A stretch of 52,442 bases of DNA from Schizochytrium sp. TIO01. Lineage: Eukaryota > Protista > Bigyra: Labyrinthulomycetes. Made by a program: the position numbers and the translations under genes. Shown in pieces: positions 81-49,500 of the stretch. The stretch is taken from contig SMSO01000008.1 of the NCBI GenBank assembly GCA_004764695.1, positions 1,086,775 through 1,139,216 on the forward strand, read 5' to 3'. Each line of letters opens with the position of its first letter. Position 1 is the stretch's first letter. A model generated the notes under the pieces. It saw only the letters and a program-made list of their open reading frames with translations, was not told the origin of the DNA and searched no databases.

Positions 81-1331
81 TCTTCAATTTGTGGAACTTG
101 ACGTCGAGGAAATGCAAGAACTTGCATCGCTTCTTGAAAAGGAAAAATTATTGAAAAGCCTATGGTACGTTCTCTTTCTCGCACGTAGATGTCTCATCTA
201 AGCAAACCAAAGCGGGTTCATTGATTTGTATCATCGAGAATAAGCTAACTCTGAATTTATTGGAGTGTCACATCATAGCCTCTCCCATAACAGTATGGGT
301 CCAGAAGGCGGGCGTGTGCTTGCAAAAGCCCTAAAAGCGAACACCTCCCTGGAAACACTAAGGTGAATTCCCTTTTAAGGTGTCTCACTACTGTGTGACA
401 GCTAACCAAGTGATAATCAACGTGTATTGATATGGTCTTTCTTAGATTATGGAGCAACGAAGTCAGCCTACGTGGCTTATGCGCAGTTGCTGACGTCTTG
501 CGAGTGAATACTTCATTGAAACCCCTGAGGTAAGCAGAAGGCGATCGTATATTCAGAGATTCGCATTCCTCAAATTGGCTACTCACTTGCCCTATGAAAT
601 ATATGCGCTTACTCTACCACTTTCAGCATTGCAGATGACCCTGTCTGTGCTGAAAGTGCAGTCGCACTTGCAAATGCATTGCGTGATAATACAACGCTGC
701 AGTCTTTCGCGTAAGTTCAACTCCAGCGTGAAATGTGCAATAGCCCTTTACTTACTTTTCAAAACAGTGTTTGGAGCAACGAGCTTGGGGCCGAATCAGC
801 AATCAAGATTGCTGAAGTCATACAGTTCAATTCAGTCCTGATAGATTTAAAGTAAGTACTTGATGCCCCCTTGTTATTCTACGGATCACTAACAGTAGCC
901 CATGTATGGTCTTTGATGTGTTCATCATGCAGCCTTTCCCGAGATGAGCTTGGGCCCAGGGACGCAGAAGTCATTGCAGGAGCTTTTAAACTAGATAGAT
1001 CTCTGCTCAGCCTTGAGTAAGTTTTATCGTGAAGGGATTTTGGGTTTTCCACCTGACTAACCCAAGACTAATCTCTATATGTCGCTCTTTATTTACTAGT
1101 ATATCATGGAACAATATCGGCAACGAAGGCACCAATGAGCTTGCAAAAGCCTTGGCAGAAAACGCCTCGTTGAAGTCTTTACAAGGCGCATAGATGACTC
1201 TATTGAATTTTTGGCATGGGAAAATGCGCAAACTATTTGCTAACCTATTTATCGTACAATGGAATTACTTCGAGCGGCGGATGTGCTCTTGCACAGGCAT
1301 TGCGGATTAATACAGGATCAGAAATTTTGGT
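81..1331 (+). CDS. LRR gene A (RI-like/NLRC3-like 28-aa repeats), 5'-partial, 3' end degenerate; 84-bp exons 81-164, 279-362, 446-529, 627-710, 768-851, 933-1016, 1100-1183, 1248-1331
   Basis: The first six exons are exactly 84 nt, bounded by AG/GT, phase 2 (e.g. LSHNSMGPEGGRVLAKALKANTSLETL). The last two are LRR-coding (e.g. ISWNNIGNEGTNELAKALAENASLKSL), but the 1184-1247 gap between them lacks GT and AG. Confidence 0.8.
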
Positions 1332-1718
1332 GTACGTTTTGAGCAAGCACATATGCATGGTTGAATTCTCCTCATCACTTTGCGTGTCATTGCTCTGTTT
1401 GATTCTACAAGCACTTTGAATAATAAATTGCAGAGCTGTAGCCTTTTGCCTTTTGGAGATTGGTTGGGTCAACTTGTGGCAAATATATGGCTCTCTGTAT
1501 AAAAGTCCGTCGATTTATTGCTAGTAGTAGATCTGAATATATGGCTTAAGAAAGTGAAGGAGGAAACCACTTTGTGAGGGTATAAATAAGCAGAAGAACC
1601 TGGCAGACTCATTACAGCGTCCTACAGTGGTTGGAATGCAAAAGCTTTTGGTCAGAGCTTGCTACTTATATATGTTCTATTGTGTAATATTACATAGACT
1701 AAAACAAAGATTATATCC

Positions 1719-2256: not shown

Positions 2257-5200
2257 TTATTCCAATCTAAAATCTGCGCCAACAATATCTGGTGTTAGCA
2301 AAGGTGACAATAACTCTTTCAGAACGAGTCGAAGATTTCTATCCTGAATTTGTGCATTCCAGTACTCACGCAGACGTTCTGCGCGGAGCAACCGCCACGC
2401 TTCACGAACCTGCTCGAATGAACCAGGGAAATATAGATCTTGCCCAAGTCTTCTTGAACACTCTCTCACATGAGTATTGCAAGCATCTTCATACTGAGAA
2501 CTATACCCAAGACACCAAGCGCAGAAGAGGTGTCCACAAGCATTATTACCACATTTTACAACGCAACAACCCTCAAACTCATATACATAAGTATTACAGT
2601 TCGGACAACATGTGCTCAAGATGTTCTCTTGAATATGCAGTAAATGCCGCCGTGCGTCACTAGTTTGTTCTTCTGCACGTAAAACTTCCGCTATACGCCT
2701 TTGAATCTCTTTCTCAGCCCAAACTGCTGCCTCACTTTCTGCCTTCATCTTCGCAATCAACAAAAGATGATTCAAAGCAGTAGGTGCAAGACGGGTGATT
2801 TCTTGACCTGATATCCTTCCACTACATTCAGGTTTCATGCATGCCATCGCCCCATCAACATCCACCCTTACGTTAGCAAGTGGTTGTGCCGCCGCTTCTA
2901 CTGCAGATTCGATACAGCCTCTGCAAAGGAAGTCCCCCTCCTCGCAGCTCGTGCCCTCAGAAAGCCGATGCTTCTCGAAACATACAAGACATTCCTTGAG
3001 AGGGATTTGTGGAGCTCCAAAAGCTTCATGTTGGAGTGCTTGACGAGCGCTTGGACGTTGACTTGGGTCTGTCGCGGTAAGAGCATCGATAAGTGTCTGC
3101 ATTGCAGCAGTCCGATCAGTGGGATACAACTCTTTTAAGCTTATGCCCACAGAGTACATGTCCATTGCTGTTTCAAACCTATCTACAGGCCCATTCTGCA
3201 ACTCAGGGGCAACGTACCGTGGCGTTGCCTGAAGTGATGTGTAAGTTGCAGTGTAGTTTGCAACCTTGATGCCGTCAAAGTCACCGATCAATGGTGTCCC
3301 GTTGCTTGTGAGGAAAATGTTTTCTGGTTTGATGTCACAATGCACAATGCCGTGGGCATGTAAATCCGCCACACCGATAAGAAGACCCACAGCAAGTCGG
3401 TCACGTGCTTCTTTGCCTTCGCTAGGATGGCTCTCAATCCACTTGGCAAGGTCACCTTGCTCGTAGAAAGGCATGACGATACAACCACGTGACTCTCCAT
3501 GTGTCATGTCCACAAAAGCACCAGTGATACGTATTACGTGCTGGGACACCACTTTGCCCAGATTGGCAACCTGCTGGTAGAAAGTTTTCGATTGACTTCG
3601 ATGTCCAAGTTGAAACTCTTTGAGAACCATAGTTTTTCCAACGTTGTCAAGAACCTTTTGGACTTTCTTGCCACCTCTAAAGGATAGGGGCTCACCGACA
3701 CGCTGAAAGTCCGAGACTGTCACATTCGTCAACCAAAGGTCAGAACATGCTACTTCAAAAACACCCTCTGCAGCTACGTGAAGCTTTTCTAGCCAAGCTC
3801 TATCCTGCAACAACTCAGGATAATGTTCCTGCGCGTGTTGCAGAGTTTCAGCAAGCTTATGACGAAAAACTTTGCTGAGCTCGATAGGGTTGCCTTTAGA
3901 AAGAATGCGCTTCTGTTTCTTGATTCGATTTCTAAAATATTCTCGTTCTTCCTCTTCCAGGTCCTCAGCTTCGAGATCTTCTCTAGCTCTTTTTAACCTC
4001 TTTGCGGCTTTTCTCGACTTGTCAAGTTTCTGATACAATTTCTCAACATCGAAGACGGAAGGTTCTTTCAAACCCAGTAATGCATAGTCATATAGTTCAG
4101 ATAGCTCTTGTGGTGTGCACTTGCTCGCTTCATTCAACATAGTGTTTTCACAGTATGATTCGAAACGAGCGAACGTTGAACTTATTGCGCAAAGTATCTT
4201 GGACAGGTGGGCACTAAGTGTATCTCCTTGAAGCGCTTCAATCTCTTCTTGAAGAGCACGCTCAAGCTCAGATAATTCGGGCCCGAGATTCATGGCCTGC
4301 TCAGGTATCCTAAGAGCAACCCATAATCCATCACCAAGTTCTAGCTCAGACAATCGAGAGACGACGCATTTTGCAGCTTGTTGGCTTCGTTCGCCAATGT
4401 TGTTTGGTCGGCCATCTCCATTCTTCATGTATCCTTCGACGAATTGGGCAGCCCGAGCAACGAGTTCTTGGCAATGTTTGAAGTCATCTGTGCTGGTCTC
4501 TTCAGTAACCGGTGCAAGGTCGATCTTTAAATCGTGTACCAAACTTTCAATTCTCATTTTGAAATCGCGGACTACATCCTCATCACTTTCGCAGAGGTTT
4601 GCGCGAACCCATGGGTACACGACCTGCATAAGTGAACGTAGGCGGTCTCGTTCAGCATTCCGCTTTTCGATGAGACTGGGCAAACCATAAGCAGAGCTTG
4701 CACGAATTTGGCCTTGTAGCGCGTCAAGACTCTCTTTAGAGTTCTTGATATCAGCGGAAACCTGTCGCAACTTCACTCGGCCAAAGTAGCCCTGGATCGC
4801 CGGTCCTACGAATATCTCAAGCAAGGCAATCCCAGTCTGCAAGGAATTTCCTCTGACCCCGCCTCGGTCCGCGCGCAAGTCCGAGACTTTCTTGGCAAGC
4901 TGCACCACATCAGCGAAACTCACGCTCGCTCCATCCGGCCGTTCTCTGAGGCGAACAAGAAGACGTAAGTAAACGAGCAAAACGATGGTGAAGCAGCAGC
5001 AAAAGCAGAAGCAAAAGTTAGTATCCCCTACATCTTAATAACACAATTCGTGAAATGAATGATTACACGATCCCAAACAAAGATTAACCGCATGAACTTA
5101 CCCGAATCCATCCAAAGTAGCAAGCCCGGCGTCATTAATGCCATCTTGCTCGTTCTTGGGCTCTGCAGAAGGCTCGCTTTCTGACGCCTCTACGGAGTCG

Positions 5201-8200
5201 GCATCTAACGAAGAATCGGTAATTTCCTCTCCAGGAGAACACACCCTTTCGAACAATCGTTTAGGGGTCAAAGACAAGCGCAGACCATCGAAACTGCGGC
5301 GTTTTGTAACAAATGTGAATACACGAATGAAAGTGAATAAGAGCGCTTGTTAGAAAAACGGTGAACGCATCTAAATGGGGCCTCGCAAGTCCATGGAGAC
5401 ATGGAGAGAACCATAGAAGGCAAGGCTCTGCGCAAGCTGGGAATATCAGCAGAGGGAACGGAACTTACGAGATTTTAACAGAAGGACATGCTTTATGCAG
5501 AGACTTTGCGACAGCCTTTGCGCCCTCCGAGCCAATGTTGTTGCCAGAAAGACTGTGAGTAGTATAATGAATAAGTTTGTTTTGTTGATTCGTTGTCAGG
5601 AAAGACAGGTCCAGTCAGTTGATCCTGTTTTGTTTTGTTTTTCCTCACAATATAAAGCAATCACCTCTTCTTCTGCTGCTGATGCTGCCTATCAAATTAT
5701 ATAGATTTCCTTCTTCTCTTTGTAAAAAAGTAAAGACTTCTTTGCCTTTCTTTGCGTACCCAACTACGTAAACTACTTAGGTAGTGTACCAGCAGTACTA
5801 CAAACACCAAGCACTAAAAAGAAAGAAAGAAAAAGCTTGGTCCTGACTATTACGATAGCTTTCCCTCGTGGATGATTCCACAAACGTACTTCAGATTAGT
5901 CAGGTTCTTGCATCCCTCGAGTGCCTTTGCGACGGCCTTTGCGCCCTCATCGCCAATGTTGTTCTACTGAAGACTGTGAGTATAAATGAATAAGTTTGTT
6001 TTGTTCATTCGTTGTCAGAAAAGACAGGTCCAGTCAGTTGATCCTGTTTTGTTTTGTTTTTCCTCACAATAAAAAGCAATCACCTCTTCTTCTTCTTCTG
6101 CTGCTGCTGCCTATCAAATTATATAGATTTCCTTCTTCTCTTTGTAAAAAAGAAAAGACTTCTTTGCCTTTCTTTGCGTACCCAACTACGTAAACTACTT
6201 AGGTAGTGTACCAGCAGTACTACAAACACCAAGCACTAAAAAGAAAGAAAGAAAAAGCTTGGTCCTGACTATTACGATAGCTTTCCCTCGTGGATGATTC
6301 CACAAACGTACTTCAGATGAGTCAGGTTCTTGCATCCCTCGAGTGCCTTTGCGACGGCCTTTGCGCCCTCATCGCCAATGTTGTTCCACTCAAGACTGTG
6401 AGTATAAATGAATAAGTTTGTTTTGTTCATTCGTTGTCAGGAAAGACAGGTCCAGTCAGTTGATCCTGTTTTGTTTTGTTTTTCCTCACAATACAAAGCA
6501 ATCACCTCTTCTTCTTCTGCTGCTGCTGCTGCCTATCAAATTATATAGATTTCCTTCTTCTCTTTGTAAAAAAGAAAAGACTTCTTTGCCTTTCTTTGCG
6601 TACCCAACTACGTAAACTACTTAGGTAGTGTACCAGCAGTAGTACTACAAACACCAAGCACTAAAAAGAAAGAAAGAAAAAGCTTGGTCCTGACTATTAC
6701 GATAGCTTTCCCTCGTGGATGATTCCACAAACGTACTTCAGATGAGTCAGGTTCTTGCATCCCTCGAGTGCCTTTGCGACGGCCTTTGCGCCCTCCGAGC
6801 CAATGTTGTTCTCCCTAAGACTGTGAGTATAAATGAATAAGTTTGTTTTGTTCATTCGTTGTCAGGAAAGACAGGTCCAGTCAGTTGATCCTGTTTTGTT
6901 TTGTTTTTCCTCACAATAAAAAGCAATCAGCTCTTCTTCTTCTTCTGCTGCTGCTGCCTATCAAATTATATAGATTTCCTTCTTCTCTTTGTAAAAAAGA
7001 AAAGACTTCTTTGCCTTTCTTTGCGTACCCAACTACGTAAACTACTTAGGTAGTGTACCAGCAGTACTACAAACACCAAGCACTAAAAAGAAAGAAAGAA
7101 AAAGCTTGGTCCTGACTATTACGATAGCTTTCCCTCGTGGATGATTCCACAAACGTACTTCAATTCTTGAAGGTTCTTGCATCCCTCGAGTGCCTTTGCG
7201 ACGGCCTTTGCGCCCTCCGAGCCAATGTTGTTCCAACCAAGACTGTGAGTATAAATGAATAAGTTTGTATTGTTCATTCGTTGTCAGGAAAGACAGGTCC
7301 AGTCAGTTGATCCTGTTTTGTTTTGTTTTTCCTCACAATAAAAAGCAATCAGCTCTTCTTCTTCTTCTTCTGCTGCTGCTGCTGCCTATCAAATTATATA
7401 GATTTCCTTCTTCTCTTTGTAAAAAAGAAAAGACTTCTTTGCCTTTCTTTGCGTACCCAACTACGTAAACTACTTAGGTAGTGTACCAGCAGTACTACAA
7501 ACACCAAGCACTAAAAAGAAAGAAAGAAAAAGCTTGGTCCTGACTATTACGATAGCTTTCCCTCGTGGATGATTCCACAAACGTACCCAAGATGAGTCAG
7601 GTTCTTGCATCCCTCGAGTGCTTTTGCGACGGCCTTTGCGCCCTCATCGCCAATGTTATTCTCAGAAAGACTGTGAGTATAAATGAATAAGTTTGTTTTG
7701 TTCATTCGTTGTCAGGAAAGACAGGTCCAGTCAGTTGATCCTGTTTTGTTTTGTTTTTCCTCACAATAAAAAGCAATTAGCTCTGCTTCTTCTGCTGCTG
7801 CTGCTGCCTATCAAATTATATAGATTTCCTTCTTCTCTTTGTAAAAAAGAAAAGACTTCTTTGCCTTTCTTTGCGTACCCAACTACGTAAACTACTTAGG
7901 TAGTGTACCAGCAGTACTACAAACACCAAGCACTAAAAAGAAAGAAAGAAAAAGCTTGGTCCTGACTATTACGATAGCTTTCCCTCGTGGATGATTCCAC
8001 AAACGTACTTCAGATGAGTCAGGTTCTTGCATCCCTCGAGTGCCTTTGCGACGGCCTTTGCGCCCTCCGAGCCAATGTTGTTATACCGAAGACTGTGAGT
8101 ATAAATGAATAAGTTTGTTTTGTTGATTCGTTGTCAGGAAAGACAGGTCCAGTCAGTTGATCCTGTTTTGTTTTGTTTTTCCTCACAATAAAAAGCAATC

Positions 8201-8744
8201 AGCTCTTCTTCTTCTGCTGCTGCTGCTGCCTATCAAATTATATAGACTTCCTTCTTCTCTTTGTAAAAAAGAAAAGACTTCTTTGCCTTTCTTTGCGTAC
8301 CCAACTACGTAAACTACATAGGTAGTGTACCAGCAGTACTACAAACACCAAGCACTACAAAGAAAGAAAGAAAAAGCTTGGTCCTGACTATTACGATAGC
8401 TTTCCCTCGTGGATGATTCCACAAACGTACTACAATTGTTGAAGGTTCTTGCATCCCTCGAGTGCCTTTGCGACGGCCTTTGCGCCCTCCGAGCCAATGT
8501 TGTTCAATCTAAGACTGTGTTTGTTTGTTTGTTTGTGAACAAGTGAGAGTAAGTATATGCCATTTCCAACTTCTTCATTAGTGCCACTACTAGTTCAAAA
8601 CTATTCTTCTTCTACAAAGCTGACTACTACAACACATCGACGACGCGATGCCTCCTTCTTCTGTCTCCTCCTTTCTCCATCGTGCACTTACCGAATCTCC
8701 GTCGTATCTTCTCTGATGTCCTTAATGCTCTTTGCCACAGTCAT
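2257..8744 (-). CDS. LRR gene B: spliced LRR(8) - coiled coil - Ser/Thr kinase - RING - Rcat/RING2-like protein; exons 8744-8692, 8514-8431, 8092-8009, 7670-7587, 7242-7159, 6820-6737, 6395-6312, 5973-5890 (contains TAG), 5552-5469, 5293-5102, 4945-2257
   Basis: All ten introns are GT-AG and phase 2; the spliced length is 3606 nt (1201 codons plus stop). Kinase motifs: VLKE, HCDIKPEN, DFDG, YVAPE, DMYSVG. RING: CLVC..C..LCRGC..CMKPEC. C-terminal zinc domain: CPNC..EGCCVVKC..CGHLFCAWC. The ORF-track start at 4980 is intronic. Confidence 0.85.
5469..8517 (-). repeat. Tandem array of ~422-bp intron+exon cassettes (8 exons, 7 near-identical introns)
   Basis: Periods 421, 422, 425, 422, 428, 422, 422. 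Length variation comes mostly from (CTT)n(CTG)n and AGT triplet slippage in the intron. Confidence 0.95.
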
Positions 8745-10013: not shown

Positions 10014-10132
10014 AACATTCAACACCGGGGCTTCGCATGCAGTCCCCTATCATACTACTGACCCGGCCCTACGCGACTTTACTTCTCAGTGCGAATGAGA
10101 TGAGGTGTTACCCGCGTGGTATGATCGAATGT
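10014..10132 (-). rRNA. 5S: 5S ribosomal RNA gene
   Basis: Minus strand reads ACATTCGATCATACCACGCGG..CATCTCATTCGCACTGAGAAGTAAAG..GGGCCGGGTCAGTAG..GAAGCCCCGGTGTTGAATGT, ~119 nt. The termini pair (ACATTC/GAATGT), a T7 Pol III terminator follows, and a TATATA motif lies ~25-30 nt upstream. Confidence 0.85.
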
Positions 10133-22539: not shown

Positions 22540-24620
22540 TAAAATTTAAAGAATTGTTTAAAAGGTTTTAATTTAAAAAGAAAGTAAAAACAATGCTATT
22601 GAGGGGGTATTTTCTCCACAAGGAGTTGATCGATGATTTTCGTTTTTGGACTACGAGCTAGGCTTCAGAACGTATGAACATTGTAGCATCACGAAAGGTA
22701 AAAATAGTTTGATTGATAGCTCAGAAGACCCCTACATCATAGTTAATGCGTTTCTTTTAACTCGCTCTGTCTTTCTCAATATATTATTACTTTGAACAAA
22801 GGGGTATTTTATCAACACCAAGAAAAGTGAGATCCACAAAAATGGTACCATTGGACAGGAAATGCAATTTGGCATAGGATAGGTGAGTCAGAATTGAAAA
22901 ATACTGTCAGCAACATTGAGTTTGACCCCTACGTAGTTGCCTTCTTTTAATTTTCTTTTAAATCTAACTGAAGGCTTTTAATTTAAAAAAGAAAGTTAGA
23001 AAAAATACTATTGAGGGGGTCTTTTCTCGATGAGGAGTTGATCGATGTTTTTCTTTTTTGGACTGCGAGCTAGGTTTCGGAATGTATGAACTTTGTGACA
23101 GCCCAAAAGTTAAAAAACATTTTATTAATAGCTCAGAAGACCCCTACATCTTAGTTAAGACGTATCTTTTAACTCGGTCTTTCTTTCTCAATATACTGTG
23201 ACTTTGAACAAAGGGATATTTTGTCAACACCAAGAATAGTGAGATCCATAACAATGATATCATTAGATCGGAAATTCAGTTTGGCATAGAATAGGCGTGT
23301 CAGAATTGAAAAATACTCACGGCAACATCGAGTTTGACCCCTACGTAGTTGCCATCTTTTAATTTTCTTTTAAATCTATTTAAAGGTTTTTAATTTTATA
23401 AAAGAAAGTAAGAAAAAGATACTATTGAGGGGGTCTTTTCTCGACAAGGAGTTGATCGATCTTTTTCGTTTTTGGACTGCGAGCTAGATTTCGGAAAGTA
23501 TGAACATTGTGACAGCACAAAAGTTAAAAAATAGTTTAATTGATAACTCAGAAGACCCCTACAGTATAGTTAAGACGTTTCTTTCAACTCGCTCTGTCTT
23601 TCTCAATATACTGTGACTTTGAACAAAGGGGTATTTTGTCAATTTCAAAAACTATCTGATCCATAAAAGTGGTTTCATTAGATAGAAAATTCAATTTGGC
23701 ATAGGATAGGTGTGTCAGAATTGAAAAATACGGTCGGCAACATTGAGTTTGACCCCTACGTAGTTGCCATCTTTTAGTTTTCTTTTAAATCGAACAGAAG
23801 TTTTTAATGTTAAAAAGAAAGTTAGAAAAAATACTATTGAGGGGGTCTTTTCTCGATGATGAGTTGATCGATGTTTTTCGTTTTTGAACTACGAGCTAGG
23901 ATTCGGAAACTATGAACATTGTGACAGCACAAAATTAAAAAAACATTTTATTAATTGCTCAGAAGACCCCTACATCATCCTTATAACGCTTCTTTCAACT
24001 CGCTCTGTCTTTCTCAATATACTATTACTTTGCATAAAGGGGTATTTTGTCAACACCAAGCAAAGAAAGGTCCATGAAAGTGCTATCCTTAGATTGGAAA
24101 TTCAATTTGGCATAGGATAGGCGTGTCAGAATTGAAAAATACGGTCGGCAACATCGAGTTTGACCCCTACGTAGTTGCCATCTTTTAATTTTCTTTTAAA
24201 TCTATTTAAAGGTTTTTAATTTTAAAAAGAAAGTAAGAAAAAGATACTATTTAGGGGGTCTTTTCTCGATGAGGTGTTGATCGATGTTTTTCGTTTTTGG
24301 ACTGCGAGCTAGGGTTCGGAAAGTATGAACCTTGTGACAGCCCAAAAGTTAAAAAACATTTTATTAATGGCTCAGAAGACCCCTACAGTATAGTTAAGAC
24401 GTTTCTTTCAACTCGCTCTGTCTTTCTCAATATACTATTACTTTGAATAAAGGGGTATTTTGTCAACACCAAGAGAAGTGAGATCCATAAAAATGATATC
24501 ATTAGATCGGAAATTTAATTTTGCATAGAATTGGTGTGCCTGAATTGAAAAATACGCTCGGCAACATCGAGTTTGACCCCTACGTAGTTGCCATCTTTTA
24601 AAATTATTTTTAATTTAACT
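22540..24620 (+). repeat. Spacer repeat family A, five ~412-bp units (LORE-TEARS-like)
   Basis: Marker TTTGACCCCTACGTAGTTGCC at 22921, 23333, 23748, 24159, 24572. Confidence 0.9.
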
Positions 24621-25150: not shown

Positions 25151-27575
25151 GATGGATCCTCACAAGGGACTATGTCAATAACCACTAAAGATATTAATAT
25201 TTGACAAGTATCACCAGAAAGCTGCTGACATTTGCAACAGGGTAAATGTGTTTTTTCAGAAAAGCAATACTTTAACATGTGTTTTTACTGACCTTTGAAA
25301 GTTATTTCTTGATCTCTCATATTATTAATAGGGGGAGGGAAACGAGTTTAGTAGTGTTGTAACTCTATGCATATAATAGATAGAACTTTGCTAGAAGCAT
25401 CGTCGGATAGCTGAATAATAGTTAAAGTGGGTGGATTTGATTTATGAGAGAAACGTTTCTTTCAAGCCTGAGAAAAGAAGCTCTAAGTTGGCACTCTAAT
25501 AGTGAGCAGCAAAATGATTAGTATAAGGTTCATTTTCTCAAGAACGGGAAAAGATATTACTCATCAGGTGGTACCGTTGGAAAGCTGTTAAAATTTACAA
25601 CAGGCTAGATGTGTTTGCTCAGGCGAAATATTTTTAAATTTATTTTTACTGACCTTTGAAAGTTATTTCTTAGTCGCCCATATCATTAATAGGGAGAAAG
25701 AAGTGAGTTTAGTAGTGCTCTAACTCAATGAATAGAATAGAAAGGACTTTGCTATAGGCACCCCTTGATAGAACATGAATTGCTGTGATGCTGGAATTTG
25801 ATTTGTGAGAAAAAAGACCCTGTCAAGCTTGAGAAAAGAAGCTCCAAGTTATCATTCTGTTTGCGAGCAGGATAGAGAATTGAACCGCTAGTATAAAATT
25901 CATTTTCTCAACAACGGGGAAAAATATTAATCATGGAGGGGTACCGTTGGAAAGCTGGGGCAATGTACAACAGGGTTGAGGTGTTTGCTTAGCTGAAATA
26001 TTCTTAAAATGTGTTTCTACTGACCTTTGAAAGATTATTTTTTGTCTCTCATATTATTAATAGGGGGCGGGAACCGGATTTAGTAGTGTTTTAACTCTTT
26101 GAGTAGAGTAAGCAGAACTTTTCTAGAAGAATCATTCGATAGCGCATGAATTGTTGAGATGAGTGCATTTAATTTATGAGAGAAAAGCTTCTTGCAAGCT
26201 TGAGAAAAGAAGCTCTAAGTTGTCACTCTGTCTATTGGCAGGATAAAGAAAACATTTGCTACTATAAGATTCATTTTCTCAACAATGGGGAAAGATATTA
26301 ATCATAGAGTGATACCGTTGGAAAGCTGTTAAGATCTACAACAGGTTAGATGCGTTTTCTCAGAAAAAATACTTTTAACATATAGTTTTATTGACCTTTG
26401 AAAGTTATTCTTTAGTCTCTCATATTATTAATAGGGGGATGGAGCCGAGTTTAGTAGTGTCCTAACTCTTTGAGTAGAATATACAGAATTTTTCTACAAA
26501 CACAATTCGATAGCTCAAGAATTGTTGAGATGGCCGCGTTTGATTTATGAGAGAAAAGCTTCTTGTAAGCTTGAGAAAAGAAGCTCTAAGTTGTCACTCT
26601 ATTTGATAACAAAAGAAAGAATAAAATGATTAGTATAAGATGCATTTTCTCAACCACGGGGAAATATATAAATCATGGACTGGTACCACTGGAAAGCGGC
26701 TTGAAATTGCAACAGGGTAGATGTAATTTATCAGAAAAAATACTTTAAACATATAGTTTTACTAACCTTTGAAAGTTTATTTTTTTTCTCTCATATTATT
26801 AATAGGGGGATGGAACCGAGTTTAGTAGTGTTTTAACTCTATGAGTAGAGTACACAGAACTTTTCTAGAAGAACCATTCGATAGCGCATGAATTGTGGAG
26901 ATGGCCGCATTTGATTTATGAATAATTTTTTTTTTCAAGTTTGAGAAAAGAAGCTCTAAGTTGTTACTCTATTTGTTGGCAGGATAGAGAATAAAATTGA
27001 TTAGTATAAGATTCATTTTCTCAATAATGAAGCAATATATTAATCATGGAGTGGTACCGTTGGAAAGCTGTTGCAATTTACAACAGGATAAATGTGTTGG
27101 TTCAGAAAAAAAAAATATGACTATGTTTTATTGACTTTTGAAAGATATTTCTTTGTTTCTCATATTATTAATAGGGGGGAGAAACCGAATTTAGTAGTGT
27201 TATAACTCTATAACTAAAACATGCAGAACTTTGCTACAAGTACCATTCGATAGCTCATACATTTTTGCGATGACCGCATCTGATTTACGAATAAACATAT
27301 TTTTGTAAGCTTGAGAAAAGAAGCTCCAAGTTGTTACTCTATTTATTACCAGGATAAAGGGTAAATTGAATAGTATAAGATTCAATATCTCAACAATGAG
27401 ATAATATATTAATCATCGAGTGGTACCATTGGAAGGCTGCTTGCATTTACAACAGGGTAGATGTGTTTTCTCAGAAAAAATACTTTTAATATATAGTTTT
27501 ACTGACCTTTGAAAGTTTAATTTTGGTCTCTCATATTATTCATAGGGGAAAGAACCAAGTTTAGTAGTGTTCTAA
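25150..27575 (+). repeat. Spacer repeat family C, ~6.5 diverged ~370-bp units, cut by Copia-1
   Basis: Marker GACCTTTGAAAG (or single-mismatch variants) near 25290, 25651, 26022, 26393, 26764, 27133, 27504. Confidence 0.9.
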
Positions 27576-46516: not shown

Positions 46517-49500
46517 ATTGAAGCTTGCACTGACCCTAAGAGACAACGTCTACTAGACAGTGCACTTTTCACCTTACTCAGCAATCAAGCTGGTCCAAAT
46601 TTTCAAAAACAACTACTACATTATGGTAAATCACACCATGGACATGAAGGACGCGCTGCCTGGGCACAGCTTCAAATTGCATTTAAAAAACAGCCTGGTG
46701 AGACCAATCTTGACAAGGTCACAGCACTCTTACAATGTCTTCGGAAATACCTTGACAATTCCCTTGAGAGTATGTCAGAAAACGAAATCATGGTATGGTT
46801 TATGGAACTATACAACACTCAGTGTGAATTGTTAGCTACTGGCATGACGTTACATGATTACATGTTTATCCTTAACCTTTTACCACGTATTCGTTACATG
46901 GGTCCACAAACAACTGCGATCTATGGCAAAGCAATTAAACTCAAAGAGTATAGTAAAGAATTGTTTCAAGAGTTACGAAACACGGAACGGGAAGTTGCAC
47001 AACAATACACACTAAAAGGCAAAAGTGGCTATTCTGCTGGGAACCCTGAACCCACACATCTACAAGCAAACTCCTTTCACCCTTCCCGGAACAAGTTCAA
47101 GCGTCAAAAACGACCTACATCTCAAAACAACAATTCCGGGGGAGCACAACAACCCTTTCCTCAAAGGAATAAATGCTCACACTGTGGTTATTCAAATCAT
47201 GCTGAGGCAAACTGCAAATTCTTGACAGCAATTTGTCCTATCTGTAACCAAGTTGGACACAGACCCTCTGTTTGTCCACGTAGATCATCGCGACAACAAA
47301 AGTCGAACAACAAGCGTCAGCGTCATAATTCAACACCACCGTACAAAGGTCTCGCGTTACACAACGCTCCTTTTGATCAAGGACCTTTTCATGCCAATTT
47401 CAGTGTCAACCTTCTGACAATCAATCATCTAAAATCAGAACCGAAGTCAGCAGAGACAACCTCAGAAGGATTCCTACTAGATTCTGGATGCAATTTGCAT
47501 GTCACACCAAATCTTGCATTACTTTCAAACTATGAGAACATTAATCCACTATCAATGGATGCAGCTCAAGGATCCTCAGTTCCGATTTTAGGAAAAGGTA
47601 CCCTGGAGGCACGAGTAAGATCAACGTCGGGTAGAATTGTTCCTTTAACACTTACAGTCTACTACGCACCTTCCCTTGCTCACACATTACTGTCGACGTC
47701 TATTATGACTCAGCAAGGATTCTCATTTTTCTTCTCACAAGATAGCGATCGTATGACCACTCCACATGGAGAAGTTATTACACTCGGTCAGCAATCTGAC
47801 ATCCCAATGCTTATCCCTGTAAAAGCACCCAAAGTTAACGCTCTGCAACTACGGAAAGCACAAAAACTCAGTTATAAAGGAATAGATTGGCTAGAAGCTC
47901 ATCTTAAATTAGGTCACGCTTCAATTCCACGCATAGCATCCTCCATAGGAGTTTCTGCATCACAAATCGACTTCTTATGCATGGATTGTAAAGTTGCCAA
48001 CTTTGAACGTATTCCAGTGACAAAAGGACCTCACACACCATATGCTAAGTCTCCTCGACAAGCTGTTACAGCTGATGTGATGGGACCATTCCACGTTCTA
48101 GGCATTCCCAACAAGTTCAAATATGCCATAGTCTACAGAGATCTTTACTCAGACTTTACATATGTTTATCCTATACAATCCACTGATCAAGTGTCCACGA
48201 CCCTTCGTACTTTTGCTCAAGCATGGCTCCAAGGTAAAAACACCTCGCGCATCATAATTCGCACAGACGGAGCTAAATATTTTACAGGCGGAGAATTTGC
48301 AAGATCACTTCACACCATGCGGTGGGAACATAAACTATCTGCACCACACTCTCATGCTACAAATCCTGCTGAAGGCATCAATCGAGTACTAATGAATGGT
48401 CTTCGCTCCAATTTAAAAACTGCATTACTCGGAGCCAAATATTGGCCCTATGCTTTATCTCATGCTGTACATGTCAAGAATCGCACAGCCTCCAGTCGCA
48501 ATCGGAAATCTCCGTACGAACGACATTTTGGCAAAGCACCAGACTACAGCTACTTCCACATTTTTGGAGCACCATGTGTGTTCAAGAAGTTTCCCATTCC
48601 GCAAAAGTTGGGAGATAGGGGTGAACTAGGCATTTTCCTTGGATATGCTGATAGTTACACTCATGGAACTGTACATGTCTTACCTAAAGACAAGTCCAAC
48701 ATTCTTCAAACGCGTGAAGTCAAGATTTTCGATCAAGCATTGACTGAACAAACTCGTCAGCGTGCAATGTCGATAGAAACCGCTCTGACACCTGATCTAA
48801 TTACTCATTGGACACGTGAAGAATCAAATAAACTAATTGCTGGAGAAATGTATCAGGATCTACCTGCTTTATCCTCCGCAGCTAATAATACTAAATCTTT
48901 CCTCACTCCTAATACCCCAGAATATAATGATGACCGTGAATCCAATAGTGAACACACTAGTCGTCCGGAGGTAAACAATGATGACCGTGAATCCAATAGT
49001 GAACACGCTAGTCGTCTGGAGGGAAATCATAATGACCGTGAATCCAGTAGTGAACACGCTAGTCATCCGGAACCAAATCATAATGACCGTGAATCCAGTA
49101 GTGAACACGCTAGTCATCCGGAACCAAATCATAATGACCGTGAATCCAGTAGTGAACACGCTAGTCATCCGGAACCAAATCATAATGACCGTGAATCCAG
49201 TAGTGAACACGCTAGTCATCCGGAACCAAATCACAATGACCGTGAATCCAGTAGTGAACACGCTAGTCATCCGGAACTAAATCACAATGACCGTGAATCC
49301 AATAGTGAACACGTTAGTCATTCTGAGGTAAATAATGATGACCGTGAATCCAAAAGTGAACATGCTCGTGAAGACATGGAACTAGAACATAGTTCAGTCC
49401 ATGCACACGATAGTCATCGGAGATCCAAAAGGACTCCCAAACCTCATGTACCACTAAATGTTGGTCCCAGTGCCAAAGGCGCTGCAAATAAATACCGATA

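Follow-up and report, generated by a model that had tools for sequence, protein, structure and literature searches.

The window analyzed here, a 52,442-nt stretch of contig SMSO01000008.1 from Schizochytrium sp. TIO01, carries on its minus strand a gene of 1,201 codons that begins with an array of LRRs and continues with a linker, a helical region, a protein kinase, and a Cys-rich tail (Table 1). The array comprises eight 84-bp exons of phase 1, each of which encodes one RI-type LRR, as found by regular expression and translation. A sequence-only reading of the window had described eight such exons separated by near-identical introns of about 340 bp, had listed a variable hexamer for each in transcript order, including one that reads Gln-stop, and had noted a helix-coding core that is invariant in seven cassettes. 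All of this was recovered. The introns between the cassettes span 337 to 344 bp and, when aligned, have substitutions in 17 of about 338 columns, mostly singletons, with indels that reflect microsatellite length. Minus-strand translation returns the eight hexamers exactly as listed, and the core, GAKAVAKALEGCKNL, is the same in cassettes 1 to 7 save for one synonymous change (AAG to AAA). The cassettes are bordered by AG upstream and GTACG downstream, with GTAAG following the last one.

Table 1. Features of the window, in gene order and then outward (cassette details: hexamer and its residues; S/D residue; 3'-block residues)
Feature	Position	Strand	Details
Exon 1 (17 codons + 2 nt)	8692..8744	-	ATG 8742-8744; donor CG/GTAAGT
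Intron 1 (177 nt)	8515..8691	-	Median identity vs other loci 96.6%
Tandem exon + intron units	5504..8519	-	TRF: period 422 bp, 7.1 copies, 95% matches; unit alignment
LRR cassette 1	8431..8514	-	AGATTG = RL; S; QQ-Y
LRR cassette 2	8009..8092	-	CGGTAT = RY; S; TH-N
LRR cassette 3	7587..7670	-	TCTGAG = SE; D; TH-G
LRR cassette 4	7159..7242	-	GGTTGG = GW; S; QE-N
LRR cassette 5	6737..6820	-	AGGGAG = RE; S; TH-N
Array intron, representative (341 nt)	6396..6736	-	At least 330 genome copies
LRR cassette 6	6312..6395	-	GAGTGG = EW; D; TH-N
LRR cassette 7	5890..5973	-	CAGTAG = Q-stop; D; TN-N
In-frame TAG, codon 189 of spliced model	5964-5966	-	In cassette 7, as assembled
Last LRR exon, divergent	5469..5552	-	TCTGGC = SG; ...KSLHKACPSVKI; Pfam LRR_6 E 9e-4
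Intron 8, outside repeat	5294..5468	-	About 87% identity between paralogs
Linker exon (192 nt), acidic and Ser-rich	5102..5293	-	Frame continuity
Intron 9	4946..5101	-	
Large 3' exon: helical region, protein kinase, Cys-rich tail	2257..4945	-	Stop 2257-2259
Protein kinase domain, ORF residues 440-619	3124..3663	-	Pfam Pkinase E 1.3e-30; PDB kinase matches
Cys-rich C-terminal module	2260..3063	-	RING/Rcat-like by motif
5S rRNA gene	10014..10132	-	Rfam; about 1.3 kb upstream of the gene, same strand
18S-28S	16100-21632		

From LRR cassettes to a kinase and a Cys-rich tail

RI-type LRRs are 28 to 29 residues long and run LxxLxLxxN and then xIGxxGAxxLAxxL. The cassette repeat has 28 aa and reads L-x-x-L-x-L-x-x-N-N-I-G-[SD]-E-G-A-K-A-V-A-K-A-L, with the intron interrupting the beta-strand motif itself (LxxLx/LxxN). 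Cassette 6, taken singly, matches Pfam LRR_6 (E 2.3e-5; 24.5 bits, above the cutoff of 23.4), and the PDB matches of the cassette include the RI-type LRR proteins DRC5, radial spoke protein 15, LRRC34, NOD2, and ribonuclease inhibitor. The divergent last LRR exon is kept as the array terminator at other loci.

What lies on either side of the array? Upstream, the N terminus encoded by exon 1 (MTVAKSIKDIREDTTEI) is hydrophilic and thus does not constitute a signal peptide; most paralogous loci have a positional homolog of this exon roughly 300 nt ahead of their first cassette. Downstream, the frame of the cassettes runs on through the linker exon, which has no Pfam match, into an ORF that stays open for 907 aa (2257-4980). 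Within this large exon, Pfam reports only kinase families, and no ROC-COR or NB-ARC domain. A motif scan finds the kinase motifs HCDIKPEN, DFD, and APE and no GxGxxG ATP loop anywhere in the exon, so that kinase activity is uncertain. The Cys-rich module has no Pfam match, even at an E value of ≤10, and its PDB matches are weak (RNF4 RING, E 0.027; Ariadne-1 RING2, E 5.7); its AF2 model, with a pLDDT of 51, is too poor for a fold search. The pattern of Cys residues is kept in relatives that are 59 to 64% identical over the module. By motif, the tail looks RING/Rcat-like, though its family is not established. Hydropathy of the joined model reveals no transmembrane segment and no signal peptide, and the best reading of the whole is a predicted cytosolic, receptor-like LRR-kinase. 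An LRR-kinase-RING-like layout of this kind would fall outside the standard architectures of immune receptors.

One peculiarity of the window copy is the in-frame stop in cassette 7. It is the sole stop among the 430 to 438 hexamer codons surveyed genome-wide, and related hexamers are found in other cassettes as CAGTAT (four times) and CAGTAC (once). Either the window copy is a fresh pseudogene, or the 84-nt cassette 7 is skipped in frame, or the assembly has a base error.

A dispersed family and its transcripts

The gene is far from alone. The large exon has at least 50 paralogs, mostly open and 60 to 93% identical at the amino acid level, as well as three distant relatives at 51 to 58% identity; a metagenome scan found no relative. 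The array intron recurs at 94 to 100% identity throughout the 64-Mb genome, with most copies near contig ends and adjoining 5S rRNA genes, and 11 of 17 other loci share the arrangement of the window, with a 5S gene upstream of the LRR-kinase gene. In the loci that were fetched, 202 of 252 gaps between introns are exactly 84 nt, and 229 of the 320 exon segments extracted combine a length of exactly 84 nt with a conserved scaffold and canonical splice sites. Exon 1-like sequence and/or the last LRR, linker, and kinase exons flank 31 of 33 arrays.

The sequence-only reading had proposed a receptor-diversifying locus and a genome search with the intron for further arrays or donor cassettes. The array does belong to a receptor-like protein, one with a kinase output, but the locus is one of at least 50 genes with at least 330 cassettes rather than a special, single one. 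The search itself yielded many arrays and no donor store among the fetched loci; because the arrays there lie in complete genes, orphan donor cassettes are ruled out for those loci.

Are these genes expressed? The transcript evidence consists of assembled contigs of public runs, whose RNA nature was guessed from their behavior, and it speaks mostly for the family rather than for single genes. In the RNA-like runs, the exon bin is 12 to 300 times deeper than the intron bins. Depth in one run (X17) is zero or near zero in intron 8 and zero in intron 9, while joints in another (X18) connect about 5275 to 5470 across intron 8 and 4946 to 5109 and 4944 to 5107 across intron 9. Many contigs from two RNA-like runs join cassette to cassette, with exactly 22 variable letters between constant parts, and the spliced junctions in two runs carry many different in-frame hexamers. 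At the family level, then, the genes are transcribed and spliced.

Variable patches and homogenized introns

Each cassette contains three variable patches. (i) The 6-nt hexamer was the one described in the sequence-only reading. (ii) A 3-nt S/D codon occupies exon columns 23 to 25. (iii) A 12-nt 3' block (columns 73 to 84) encodes the two x residues of LxxL and includes the split codon. The latter two are additional to that reading. By motif register, the patches are the x positions of LxxLxLxxN together with one loop residue, and the variable residues are predicted, purely from this register, to map to the concave beta-sheet or to the beta-alpha loop. The window array shows variation in 19 of its 21 patch columns but in just 17 of the 338 intron columns (Fisher P = 9e-20), and the same comparison restricted to the hexamer, where 6 of 6 columns vary, gives P = 5e-8. 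Over 219 cassettes, pi reaches 0.56 to 0.71 in the hexamer, 0.52 to 0.58 in the S/D codon, and 0.35 to 0.71 in the 3' block, while the scaffold (columns 26 to 72) stays at ≤0.04. The few codons predicted to face a ligand differ as much as random sequences would.

S, G, N, Y, R, W, Q, D, and E account for 86.5% of the residues that the hexamers encode and A, V, L, I, M, and P for 3.5%, and one stop is observed where about 18 would be expected. The pool is limited to 88 types in the 219 cassettes, which are reused always with the same codons; this argues for inheritance and transfer, not generation de novo. The earlier claim of a different hexamer in every cassette is true of the window array but not of the genome, where 6.8% of hexamer pairs within arrays are identical against 1.9% between arrays, a 3.6-fold excess. 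There is thus no sign of enforced uniqueness within arrays, and selection for all-different hexamers within an array can be ruled out. A multi-cassette periodicity is visible at one locus (L021).

How sharply are the patches bounded? At the 5' edge of the hexamer, the synonymous column 4 has a pi of 0.01 and its neighbor, column 5, a pi of 0.71. An edge this sharp is more easily explained by a process acting on the patch than by the hitch-hiking of old alleles. Hexamer divergence is about 0.63 at any flank divergence, and the differences are bimodal, at either 0 or 3 to 5 nt. For Leu codons in the patches, pS is 0.61 and pN is 0.05; pS in the scaffold is 0.025. Linkage disequilibrium is strong inside patches (z of 15 to 42), and none is detected between patches only 12 nt apart (z ≤1.1). 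For ordinary recombination, it is unusual to find complete linkage equilibrium at 12 nt beside strong disequilibrium at 3 nt. In three arrays, indels of 1 to 2 nt fall exactly at patches and include the hybrid S/D forms TCGATGAG and GATCGGAG and short hexamers. These hybrids adjoin intact kinase ORFs of 925 to 932 aa, and we read the indels as consensus errors from mixed reads, although they could be biological.

The array introns behave in the opposite way to the patches. They are 97.7% identical between loci, compared to about 87% for non-array introns and 82 to 88% for the large exon. Among 285 copies, intron pi is 0.031 (0.027 within arrays and 0.032 between loci), and the scaffold is also homogenized genome-wide, with a pi of ≤0.04 that includes synonymous sites. 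Alignment of the units with diversity computed per site thus bears out two claims of the sequence-only reading, that the introns are homogenized and that variation is focused on the positions predicted to face a ligand. Nor do the introns follow the rest of the gene. The nearest paralog by kinase exon (93% aa identity) has LRR introns that are only 80% identical, and paralogs with 82 to 84% aa identity in this exon share introns at 97 to 99%. Such phylogenetic incongruence and the linkage equilibrium between patches are indirect signs that point to recombination among cassettes and loci.

A putative receptor family, its alternatives, and its counterparts

How could homogenized introns and saturated patches arise side by side? 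The explanation that we consider probable, taken as a whole, is a germline family of receptor-like LRR-kinases subject to ectopic recombination and diversifying selection. In this view, the array would form the ligand-binding part of a cytosolic, receptor-like protein encoded in the germline. The 422-bp unit would stay near-identical within and between loci through frequent unequal crossing-over and ectopic gene conversion, and the patches would be old, saturated variation that is reassorted independently and that selection keeps varied, free of stops, and rich in polar or aromatic residues. Combinatorial concave-surface specificities would result, feeding a common kinase and RING-like output, and the genes that encode them lie for the most part in subtelomeric regions linked to 5S/rDNA. 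That the family serves in immunity or non-self recognition is something that we only infer.

What, if not pathogens, might be bound? The proteins could serve in allorecognition or mating-type-like self/non-self discrimination, or could be variable scaffolds for signaling or cilia, a possibility to which we give a modest but real chance. Many RI-type LRR proteins are axonemal, and the best PDB matches of the cassette include the axonemal DRC5, radial spoke protein 15, and LRRC34. Moreover, the fungal NLR-like genes with hypervariable repeats, the closest mechanistic analog, have allorecognition genes among them (PMC13449251). Housekeeping scaffolds, however, are not usually subtelomeric families of at least 50 members with saturated surface positions, and the mirusvirus-like elements in a published thraustochytrid genome indicate that viral pressure exists (10.1101/2023.06.15.545109). 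The family is suited to asking whether unicellular hosts of giant-virus-like elements carry large cytosolic recognition repertoires.

A different mechanism is conceivable as well, though we think it unlikely: a process, dedicated or a by-product, that rewrites or exchanges the 3- to 12-nt patches as units. Candidates are the independent repair of mismatch bubbles in heteroduplex formed by cassettes that match elsewhere, templated micro-conversion, and local hypermutation, and such a process might run during vegetative growth, so that clones would differ in a contingency-like or adaptive-like manner. It would account for edges that pass from near invariance to saturation across one base, for synonymous and nonsynonymous sites that are equally saturated inside patches, for patches that are indivisible and yet assort freely at a 12-nt spacing, and for the near absence of 1- to 2-nt intermediates between hexamers; the hybrid S/D forms and short hexamers of the three arrays could be its traces. 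The reused hexamer pool with its constant codons speaks against it, as does the lack of a donor-cassette store, 31 of 33 arrays being in complete genes, and the hybrids, beside intact kinase ORFs, look like consensus errors. The stronger version, in which patches are actively rewritten or swapped as discrete units, for example through independent resolution of mismatch bubbles in subtelomeric arrays that pair ectopically very often, we regard as doubtful. If it were true and took place in clonal growth, a protist would be continuously making receptor variants, an anticipatory, contingency-type form of recognition built from intron-separated LRR cassettes.

Could the pattern instead stem from a simple, recent burst of duplications, both tandem and dispersed, after which point mutations at binding residues came under ordinary positive selection, with no ongoing exchange? 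The excess of identical hexamers within arrays, the periodicity at L021, and introns that look uniformly young would all suit it. Yet the same genes have diverged by 12 to 18% in their kinase exon and in introns outside the array, the intron tree disagrees with the kinase tree, hexamer distance does not depend on flank distance and steps of 1 to 2 nt are almost absent, and synonymous sites are saturated inside the patches but not in the scaffold. These results have already largely refuted a burst without exchange, and we hold it to be improbable. Least credible of all is a reading of the 422-bp repeat as non-coding spacer or satellite DNA of the subtelomeres, with a role at chromosome ends and a coding appearance that is incidental, or of the patch variation as an assembly artifact, since the published standing of ~421-bp repeats between 5S genes as spacers without GenBank similarity (10.1101/2023.06.15.545109) and the consensus-type errors in some arrays are set against 229 of 320 segments that are proper 84-nt exons, the depletion of stops, the spliced junctions with many in-frame hexamers in two runs, and a frame continuous into an open kinase ORF of 907 aa.

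The putative germline receptor family has counterparts elsewhere. In Ectocarpus, ROCO (LRR-ROC-COR) and NB-ARC-TPR genes are exon-shuffled candidate immune receptors, for which stop-containing "inactivated exons" and alternative splicing have been described (Zambounis et al. 2012, PMC3341825; PMC11378527). The ROCO genes resemble the present family in belonging to a stramenopile, in having one exon of fixed length and symmetric phase per repeat, in forming clustered, fast-evolving families, in concentrating variability at LxxLxLxxN, and in the proposed role as immune receptors. They differ in exon size (72 nt and 24 aa there; 84 nt and 28 aa of RI type here) and in output, which here is a kinase with a Cys-rich tail rather than ROC-COR or NB-ARC. 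In further contrast to the brown algal case, the introns here hardly vary across the genome (pi 0.03), orphan LRR exons were not encountered either within introns or on the reverse strand, and the genes are tied to 5S/rDNA and subtelomeres.

In the ciliate Tetrahymena, thousands of genes have arrays of 90-bp LRR exons that are separated by introns of phase 2 and associated with a LINE-like element (Xiong et al. 2019, PMC6564038). As described there, the arrays likewise consist of nucleotide-level tandem units of exon plus intron, in which neither exon length nor intron phase varies; the introns of young cohorts are long and uniform, the arrays are enriched in subtelomeric regions, some genes are fused to protein kinases, and unequal crossing-over or ectopic recombination is proposed. 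Here, exons are 84 bp, introns are in phase 1, and about 50 or more genes share a fixed LRR-kinase architecture. Patch-wise hypervariability and homogenization between loci are not among the features reported in the part of that account on which we draw. The present family would add to brown algae and ciliates a third, independent lineage of protists with variable one-LRR-per-exon arrays.

Among fungal NLR-like genes with hypervariable repeats, HNWD of Podospora is reportedly an older example. Such genes have highly conserved internal repeats with hypervariable positions (PMC13449251). There, as here, repeats are near-identical at the DNA level within and between paralogs (concerted evolution), exchange occurs between loci, a handful of surface positions are hypervariable, and non-self recognition is proposed; the present repeats, too, are more alike between paralogs than is the rest of the gene, with few positions saturated. 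The fungal repeats are WD40, ANK, or TPR within one exon, on NACHT or NB-ARC, unlike the LRRs here, each with its own intron, on a kinase. The signal in the present family is unusually clean, with introns and synonymous scaffold sites at a pi of about 0.03 and three saturated patches that assort freely 12 nt apart, which makes the family suitable for studying, down to the base pair, how diversifying selection can persist alongside concerted evolution.

The VLR system of lampreys and hagfish works from an incomplete germline gene and flanking donor cassettes by somatic copy-choice. It resembles the present family in drawing its diversity from LRR cassettes and in variation on the concave surface (here predicted). 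Unlike in that system, 31 of 33 arrays here lie within complete genes, which makes a donor-cassette or somatic-assembly system a poor fit.

Closest in location are the LORE-TEARS of Aurantiochytrium limacinum, whose Group 5, of ~421 bp and about five copies, lies between or beside 5S genes near subtelomeric rDNA and was described as a class of spacers with neither coding potential nor similarity to database sequences (10.1101/2023.06.15.545109). By unit length and placement, the tandem units of Table 1, with the neighboring 5S and 18S-28S genes, can be likened to this group, with the difference that the unit here is an LRR exon plus an intron. In the literature on Aurantiochytrium LRRs and LORE-TEARS, no paper describing an LRR-kinase cassette family was found. 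A repeat class published as a non-coding chromosome-end spacer would become the modular, predicted ligand-binding domain of a large receptor-like family. The layout of subtelomeric rDNA, 5S genes, and repeats of about 370 to 420 bp agrees with that published for Aurantiochytrium, and the window holds further tandem arrays of 412, 371, and 377 bp that are placed similarly to LORE-TEARS Groups 1, 2, and 0.

Cassette exons and the gene that carries them

The array is made up of eight 84-bp exons on the minus strand with seven introns of 337 to 344 bp between them; TRF run on the window reports it as a 422-bp period with 7.1 copies and 95% matches. As read from the sequence, the exons are bordered by AG and GTACG, with GTAAG behind the last one, and all eight are phase 1, as each begins on the third base of a split codon. 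A cassette translates as L-xx-N-N-I-G-[S/D]-E-G-A-K-A-V-A-K-A-L-E-G-C-K-N-L-xx-L plus the split codon. The sequence-only reading had assigned a different hexamer (the two codons between L and N of LxxN) to every cassette, and rereading returned the same eight, including CAGTAG (Q-stop) in cassette 7.

From the last LRR exon the frame is unbroken through the linker exon into the large 3' exon, giving a spliced model of 1201 codons whose one internal stop, codon 189, is the TAG of cassette 7. It is the sole stop among the hexamer codons surveyed, and CAGTAG lies one substitution away from CAGTAT and CAGTAC, both present in other cassettes. The TAG may have arisen recently by nonsense mutation, may reflect an erroneous base, or may be tolerated because the 84-nt exon is skipped in frame.

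Coordinates of features in the window and of related loci (L, loci fetched from contigs C of the same genome)
Feature	Position	Strand	Remark
Exon 1, 53 nt	ATG 8742-8744	-	donor GTAAGT
422-bp tandem array (TRF)	5504-8519	-	
Last, divergent LRR exon	5469-5552	-	precedes intron 8
Acidic linker exon, 192 nt	5102-5293	-	between introns 8 and 9
Large 3' exon, 2.7 kb	2257-4945	-	after intron 9
RI-type LRR-like ORF pieces	1017-1419	+	downstream of kinase gene
5S rRNA gene	1.3 kb upstream of LRR gene	-	same strand as LRR gene
377-bp repeat, 2.8 copies	10719-11771	+	between 5S and 18S genes
18S-5.8S-28S unit, complete	16100-21632	+	convergent with next unit
18S-5.8S-28S unit, complete	37540-43050	-	convergent with previous unit
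412-414-bp tandem array	22557-24601		follows first rRNA unit
412-414-bp tandem array	35052-36552		follows second rRNA unit
371-bp tandem array	25217-27575		
51-bp tandem repeat	48930-49366		8.6 copies, 93% matches
L001	C7:1066000-1075999		just outside window; indels at patches
L013	C23		indels at patches, further indels in scaffold, runs of N
L020	C12:14000-22000		indels at patches
L023	C32:2890000-2898500		
L025	C24:1-9500		
L035	C6:1075500-1085499		internal
L036	C24:4024000-4033999		internal

What kind of protein is encoded? With exons queried singly, a lone cassette matches LRR_6 in Pfam (E 2.3e-5), and its PDB matches are RI-type LRR proteins (DRC5, rabbit NOD2, ribonuclease inhibitor, and LRRC34). 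The large exon holds a protein kinase domain (Pfam E 1.3e-30, with PDB matches too) carrying the motifs HCDIKPEN, DFD, and APE; a motif scan of this exon found no glycine-rich loop in the domain. Its C-terminal tail is Cys-rich, and the cysteine pattern gives it a weak likeness to RING/Rcat domains. A Pfam search of the tail returned no match, PDB matches are weak (RNF4 RING, E 0.027; Ariadne RING2, E 5.7), and the AF2 model has a pLDDT of 51. The spliced model contains no signal peptide or hydrophobic segment (Kyte-Doolittle maximum, 1.47), which predicts a cytosolic location. Judged from this architecture, it would be a cytosolic sensor that signals via the kinase and the RING-like tail, and an immune role for the family can be hypothesized.

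Variable patches, scaffold, and introns

When seven units of the array are aligned, the variable columns fall into three patches: the hexamer (6/6), the S/D codon (3/3; exon columns 23-25), and the exon 3' end (10/12; columns 73-84). Substituted columns number 2/63 in the scaffold and 17/~338 in the intron, and Fisher's test of patches versus intron gives P = 9e-20. A variable hexamer among homogenised introns, as first proposed, is thus a real pattern, far beyond chance; the S/D codon and the 3' block had been missed.

The same picture holds across 219 clean cassettes from 30 loci. Intron pi is 0.031 (n = 285) versus a hexamer diversity of 0.56-0.71, a comparison on which the original claim had been staked. 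The S/D codon reaches 0.52-0.58 and columns 73-84 reach 0.35-0.71, on a scale whose saturation value is 0.75, and columns 26-72 stay at or below 0.04, synonymous positions included. Introns of one array differ (pi 0.027) nearly as much as introns of loci on different contigs (0.032), and geographic structure is thus almost absent. Three arrays (L001, L013, and L020) were left out of these statistics. They carry 1-2-nt indels exactly at the patches, among them hybrids of the two S/D codons (TCGATGAG, GATCGGAG) and 4-5-nt "hexamers." The probable cause is an erroneous consensus, with reads assigned to the wrong one of several near-identical units, although the indels may be biological in origin; next to two of the three arrays the kinase ORF is intact (925 and 932 aa).

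In the register of the motif L-x-x-L-x-L-x-x-N, the variable residues are x2, x3, x5, x7, and x8, plus one residue of the following loop. In LRR structures, these x positions make up the concave face. The intron falls between x5 and the next Leu, and each structural beta-strand is consequently encoded by one cassette's 3' patch together with the next cassette's hexamer.

A synonymous/nonsynonymous comparison had also been proposed. At two Leu codons within the 3' block, pS is 0.61, which is saturated, and pN is 0.05; in the hexamer, pS is 0.55 versus 0.025 in the scaffold. Since synonymous sites in the patches are saturated, the excess is one of nucleotide divergence and not only of amino acid replacement, and a young family under simple positive selection on point mutations does not fit. 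Hexamer divergence is also independent of flank divergence. Between cassettes whose flanking introns are 0.5-1% apart, 64% of hexamer positions differ, and among pairs with less than 1% flank divergence the hexamer differences are bimodal (0 nt in 13 pairs, 1-2 nt in 12, and 3-6 nt in 123).

Association within a patch is strong: z is 15.6 for the hexamer's pair of codons and 17-42 for positions in the 3' block. Between patches there is none: z = 0.9 for the hexamer versus the S/D codon, 12 nt apart, 0.7 for the S/D codon versus the 3' block, and at most 0.6 for the 3' block versus the following cassette's hexamer across the intron. The hexamers come from a finite, reused pool of 88 sequences and 74 residue pairs; TACAAC, for example, was seen 17 times with its codons constant and its S/D and 3'-block backgrounds different. 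This pool has been filtered. One stop was observed versus ~18 expected from column base frequencies, the residues S, G, N, Y, R, W, Q, D, and E account for 86.5% of those encoded by hexamers, and A, V, L, I, M, and P account for 3.5% versus ~36% for random sense codons. Local duplication occurs too: hexamers are identical at a rate of 6.8% within arrays versus 1.9% between arrays, a difference reached by 0/5,000 permutations. A 99-bp exon variant was found nine times (in L004, L006, L012, L023, L025, and L026) with 21 nt (G-G-G-F-F-G-G) in the hexamer's place, which would make a loop five residues longer on the predicted binding face.

A family of complete genes and exchange between them

The genome search for other arrays suggested in the sequence-only reading was run with the 341-bp intron, which matches at least 330 sites, 94-100% identical to it, on at least 16 contigs. 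For the 907-aa exon, at least 50 paralogs were found; they are 60-93% identical to it in aa sequence, and most are open for ~925 codons. Intron copies in the 34 loci retrieved number 280, or 287 once the seven of the window are added, and the gap between neighboring introns is exactly 84 nt in 202 of 252 cases. Arrays range from 2-3 cassettes, at two internal loci, to ~19; 20 of 33 loci are no more than 100 kb from the end of their contig, and a 5S gene stands ~1.5 kb upstream on the same strand at 11 of the 17 loci tested. Does the genome also hold donor cassettes? In 31 of 33 arrays the terminator LRR exon, linker exon, and kinase exon follow in the same order; among the loci retrieved, the arrays thus belong to complete genes and are not banks of orphan cassettes.

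Paralogs share 97.7% identity in their array introns and 96.6% in intron 1, versus ~87% in the two non-array introns, 83% in the linker exon, and 82-88% in the kinase exon of the same genes. The nearest kinase-exon paralog, on C6 (93% aa), has an LRR intron just 80% identical to the family intron, and the second nearest, on C24 (91% aa), has introns 91% identical, whereas paralogs at only 82-84% aa have introns 97-99% identical. Array sequence therefore moves between loci independently of the remainder of the gene, an incongruence for which recent whole-gene duplication cannot account. L035 and L036, whose kinase exons most resemble that of the window's gene, carry only 2-3 LRR exons each. Their introns are longer, at 364-382 bp, and share 80-91% identity with the family intron; both copies have apparently left the homogenising pool.

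The evidence best supports a germline-encoded multigene family in which unequal crossing-over and ectopic gene conversion often rearrange the LRR arrays. Both would be favored by long, perfectly matching introns and scaffold and by clustering at chromosome ends, and the three patches would be old alleles whose diversity is maintained by selection and which are reshuffled independently. A heteroduplex between two cassettes would be mismatched only at three small clusters, each of which could be repaired as a unit, independently of the other two; this is a plausible explanation for the modularity of the patches. Alternatively, a patch-targeted process may act on them. The 5' edge of the hexamer is sharp, with a pi of 0.01 at synonymous column 4 and 0.71 at the adjoining column 5, and this edge, like the full linkage equilibrium at 12 nt, is a poor fit for ordinary hitch-hiking.

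L023 and L025, at one contig's end and another's start, share the same cassette order and the same patch states, reflecting either a very recent subtelomeric duplication or one chromosome end assembled twice.

Expression, related systems, and chromosomal setting

Are the cassettes expressed? Assembled contigs of public runs, two DNA-like and two guessed to be RNA (X17 and X18), were compared with window positions 4000-5990. The DNA-like runs cover the intron bins 30-100 times more deeply than the remainder, as expected from hundreds of copies. The cassette-exon bin is ~100-300 times deeper than the intron bins in X17 and 12-25 times in X18. Depth in X17 is zero over predicted introns 8 and 9, and X18 contains joints at ~4946>5109, ~5275>5470, and 5543>5891. 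Many X18 contigs pass from one cassette's constant part to the next with exactly 22 letters between, namely exon columns 73-84 and the next exon's columns 1-10 (on the coding strand, ...xx, the junction, then TCTT and the hexamer), and the in-frame hexamers at these junctions vary between contigs. From these depths, joints, and junctions it follows that cassettes are transcribed and that splicing uses exactly the sites predicted. At the level of the family, this conclusion from contigs of runs guessed to be RNA is solid. For the window's own locus it is suggestive. X17 contigs show 0-1 differences from the window's kinase exon over 139 and 326 nt.

The closest known systems are the LRR exon cassettes of Ectocarpus ROCO genes (PMC3341825, PMC11378527), the 90-bp-exon LRR arrays of Tetrahymena (PMC6564038), and fungal NLR-like genes whose repeats are highly conserved apart from hypervariable sites (PMC13449251). 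The present family is set apart from all three by the type and length of its repeats, the phase of its introns and how nearly identical they are across the genome, its effector domains, and its linkage to 5S/rDNA. It lacks the defining features of ROCO genes, the Tetrahymena class, and VLR-type assembly. Targeted searches of the thraustochytrid literature found no description of this family. Its significance would be much greater if diversification were active during clonal growth.

The window is the final 52 kb of a 1.14-Mb contig in a 64-Mb genome of 37 contigs, with no telomeric repeats where the contig ends (position 52442). Its other tandem arrays have periods of 377, 412, 371, and 414 bp, and a 51-bp repeat is also present. 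The convergent rRNA units with their arrays may have arisen by inverted duplication, or the assembly may have folded back on itself here. The layout of 5S gene, rRNA units, and tandem arrays is that published for Aurantiochytrium limacinum chromosome ends, where 366-529-bp LORE-TEARS were called spacers without database similarity and "Group 5" consists of ~5 repeats of ~421 bp between 5S genes (preprint 10.1101/2023.06.15.545109). The 422-bp array agrees with Group 5 in the length of its unit and in where it lies, and may be its counterpart.

The 377-bp repeat encodes RI-type LRR exons (...SL-xx-N-x-IGSEGAKAV...KENRSLTSL), a second, more diverged cassette family in a position like that of the published "Group 0" LORE-TEARS. 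The ORF pieces downstream of the kinase gene (WNNIGNEGTNELAKALAENASLKSL; LSYNGITSSGGCALAQALRIN) probably belong to a further LRR gene, one whose repeats have diverged and are not homogenised.
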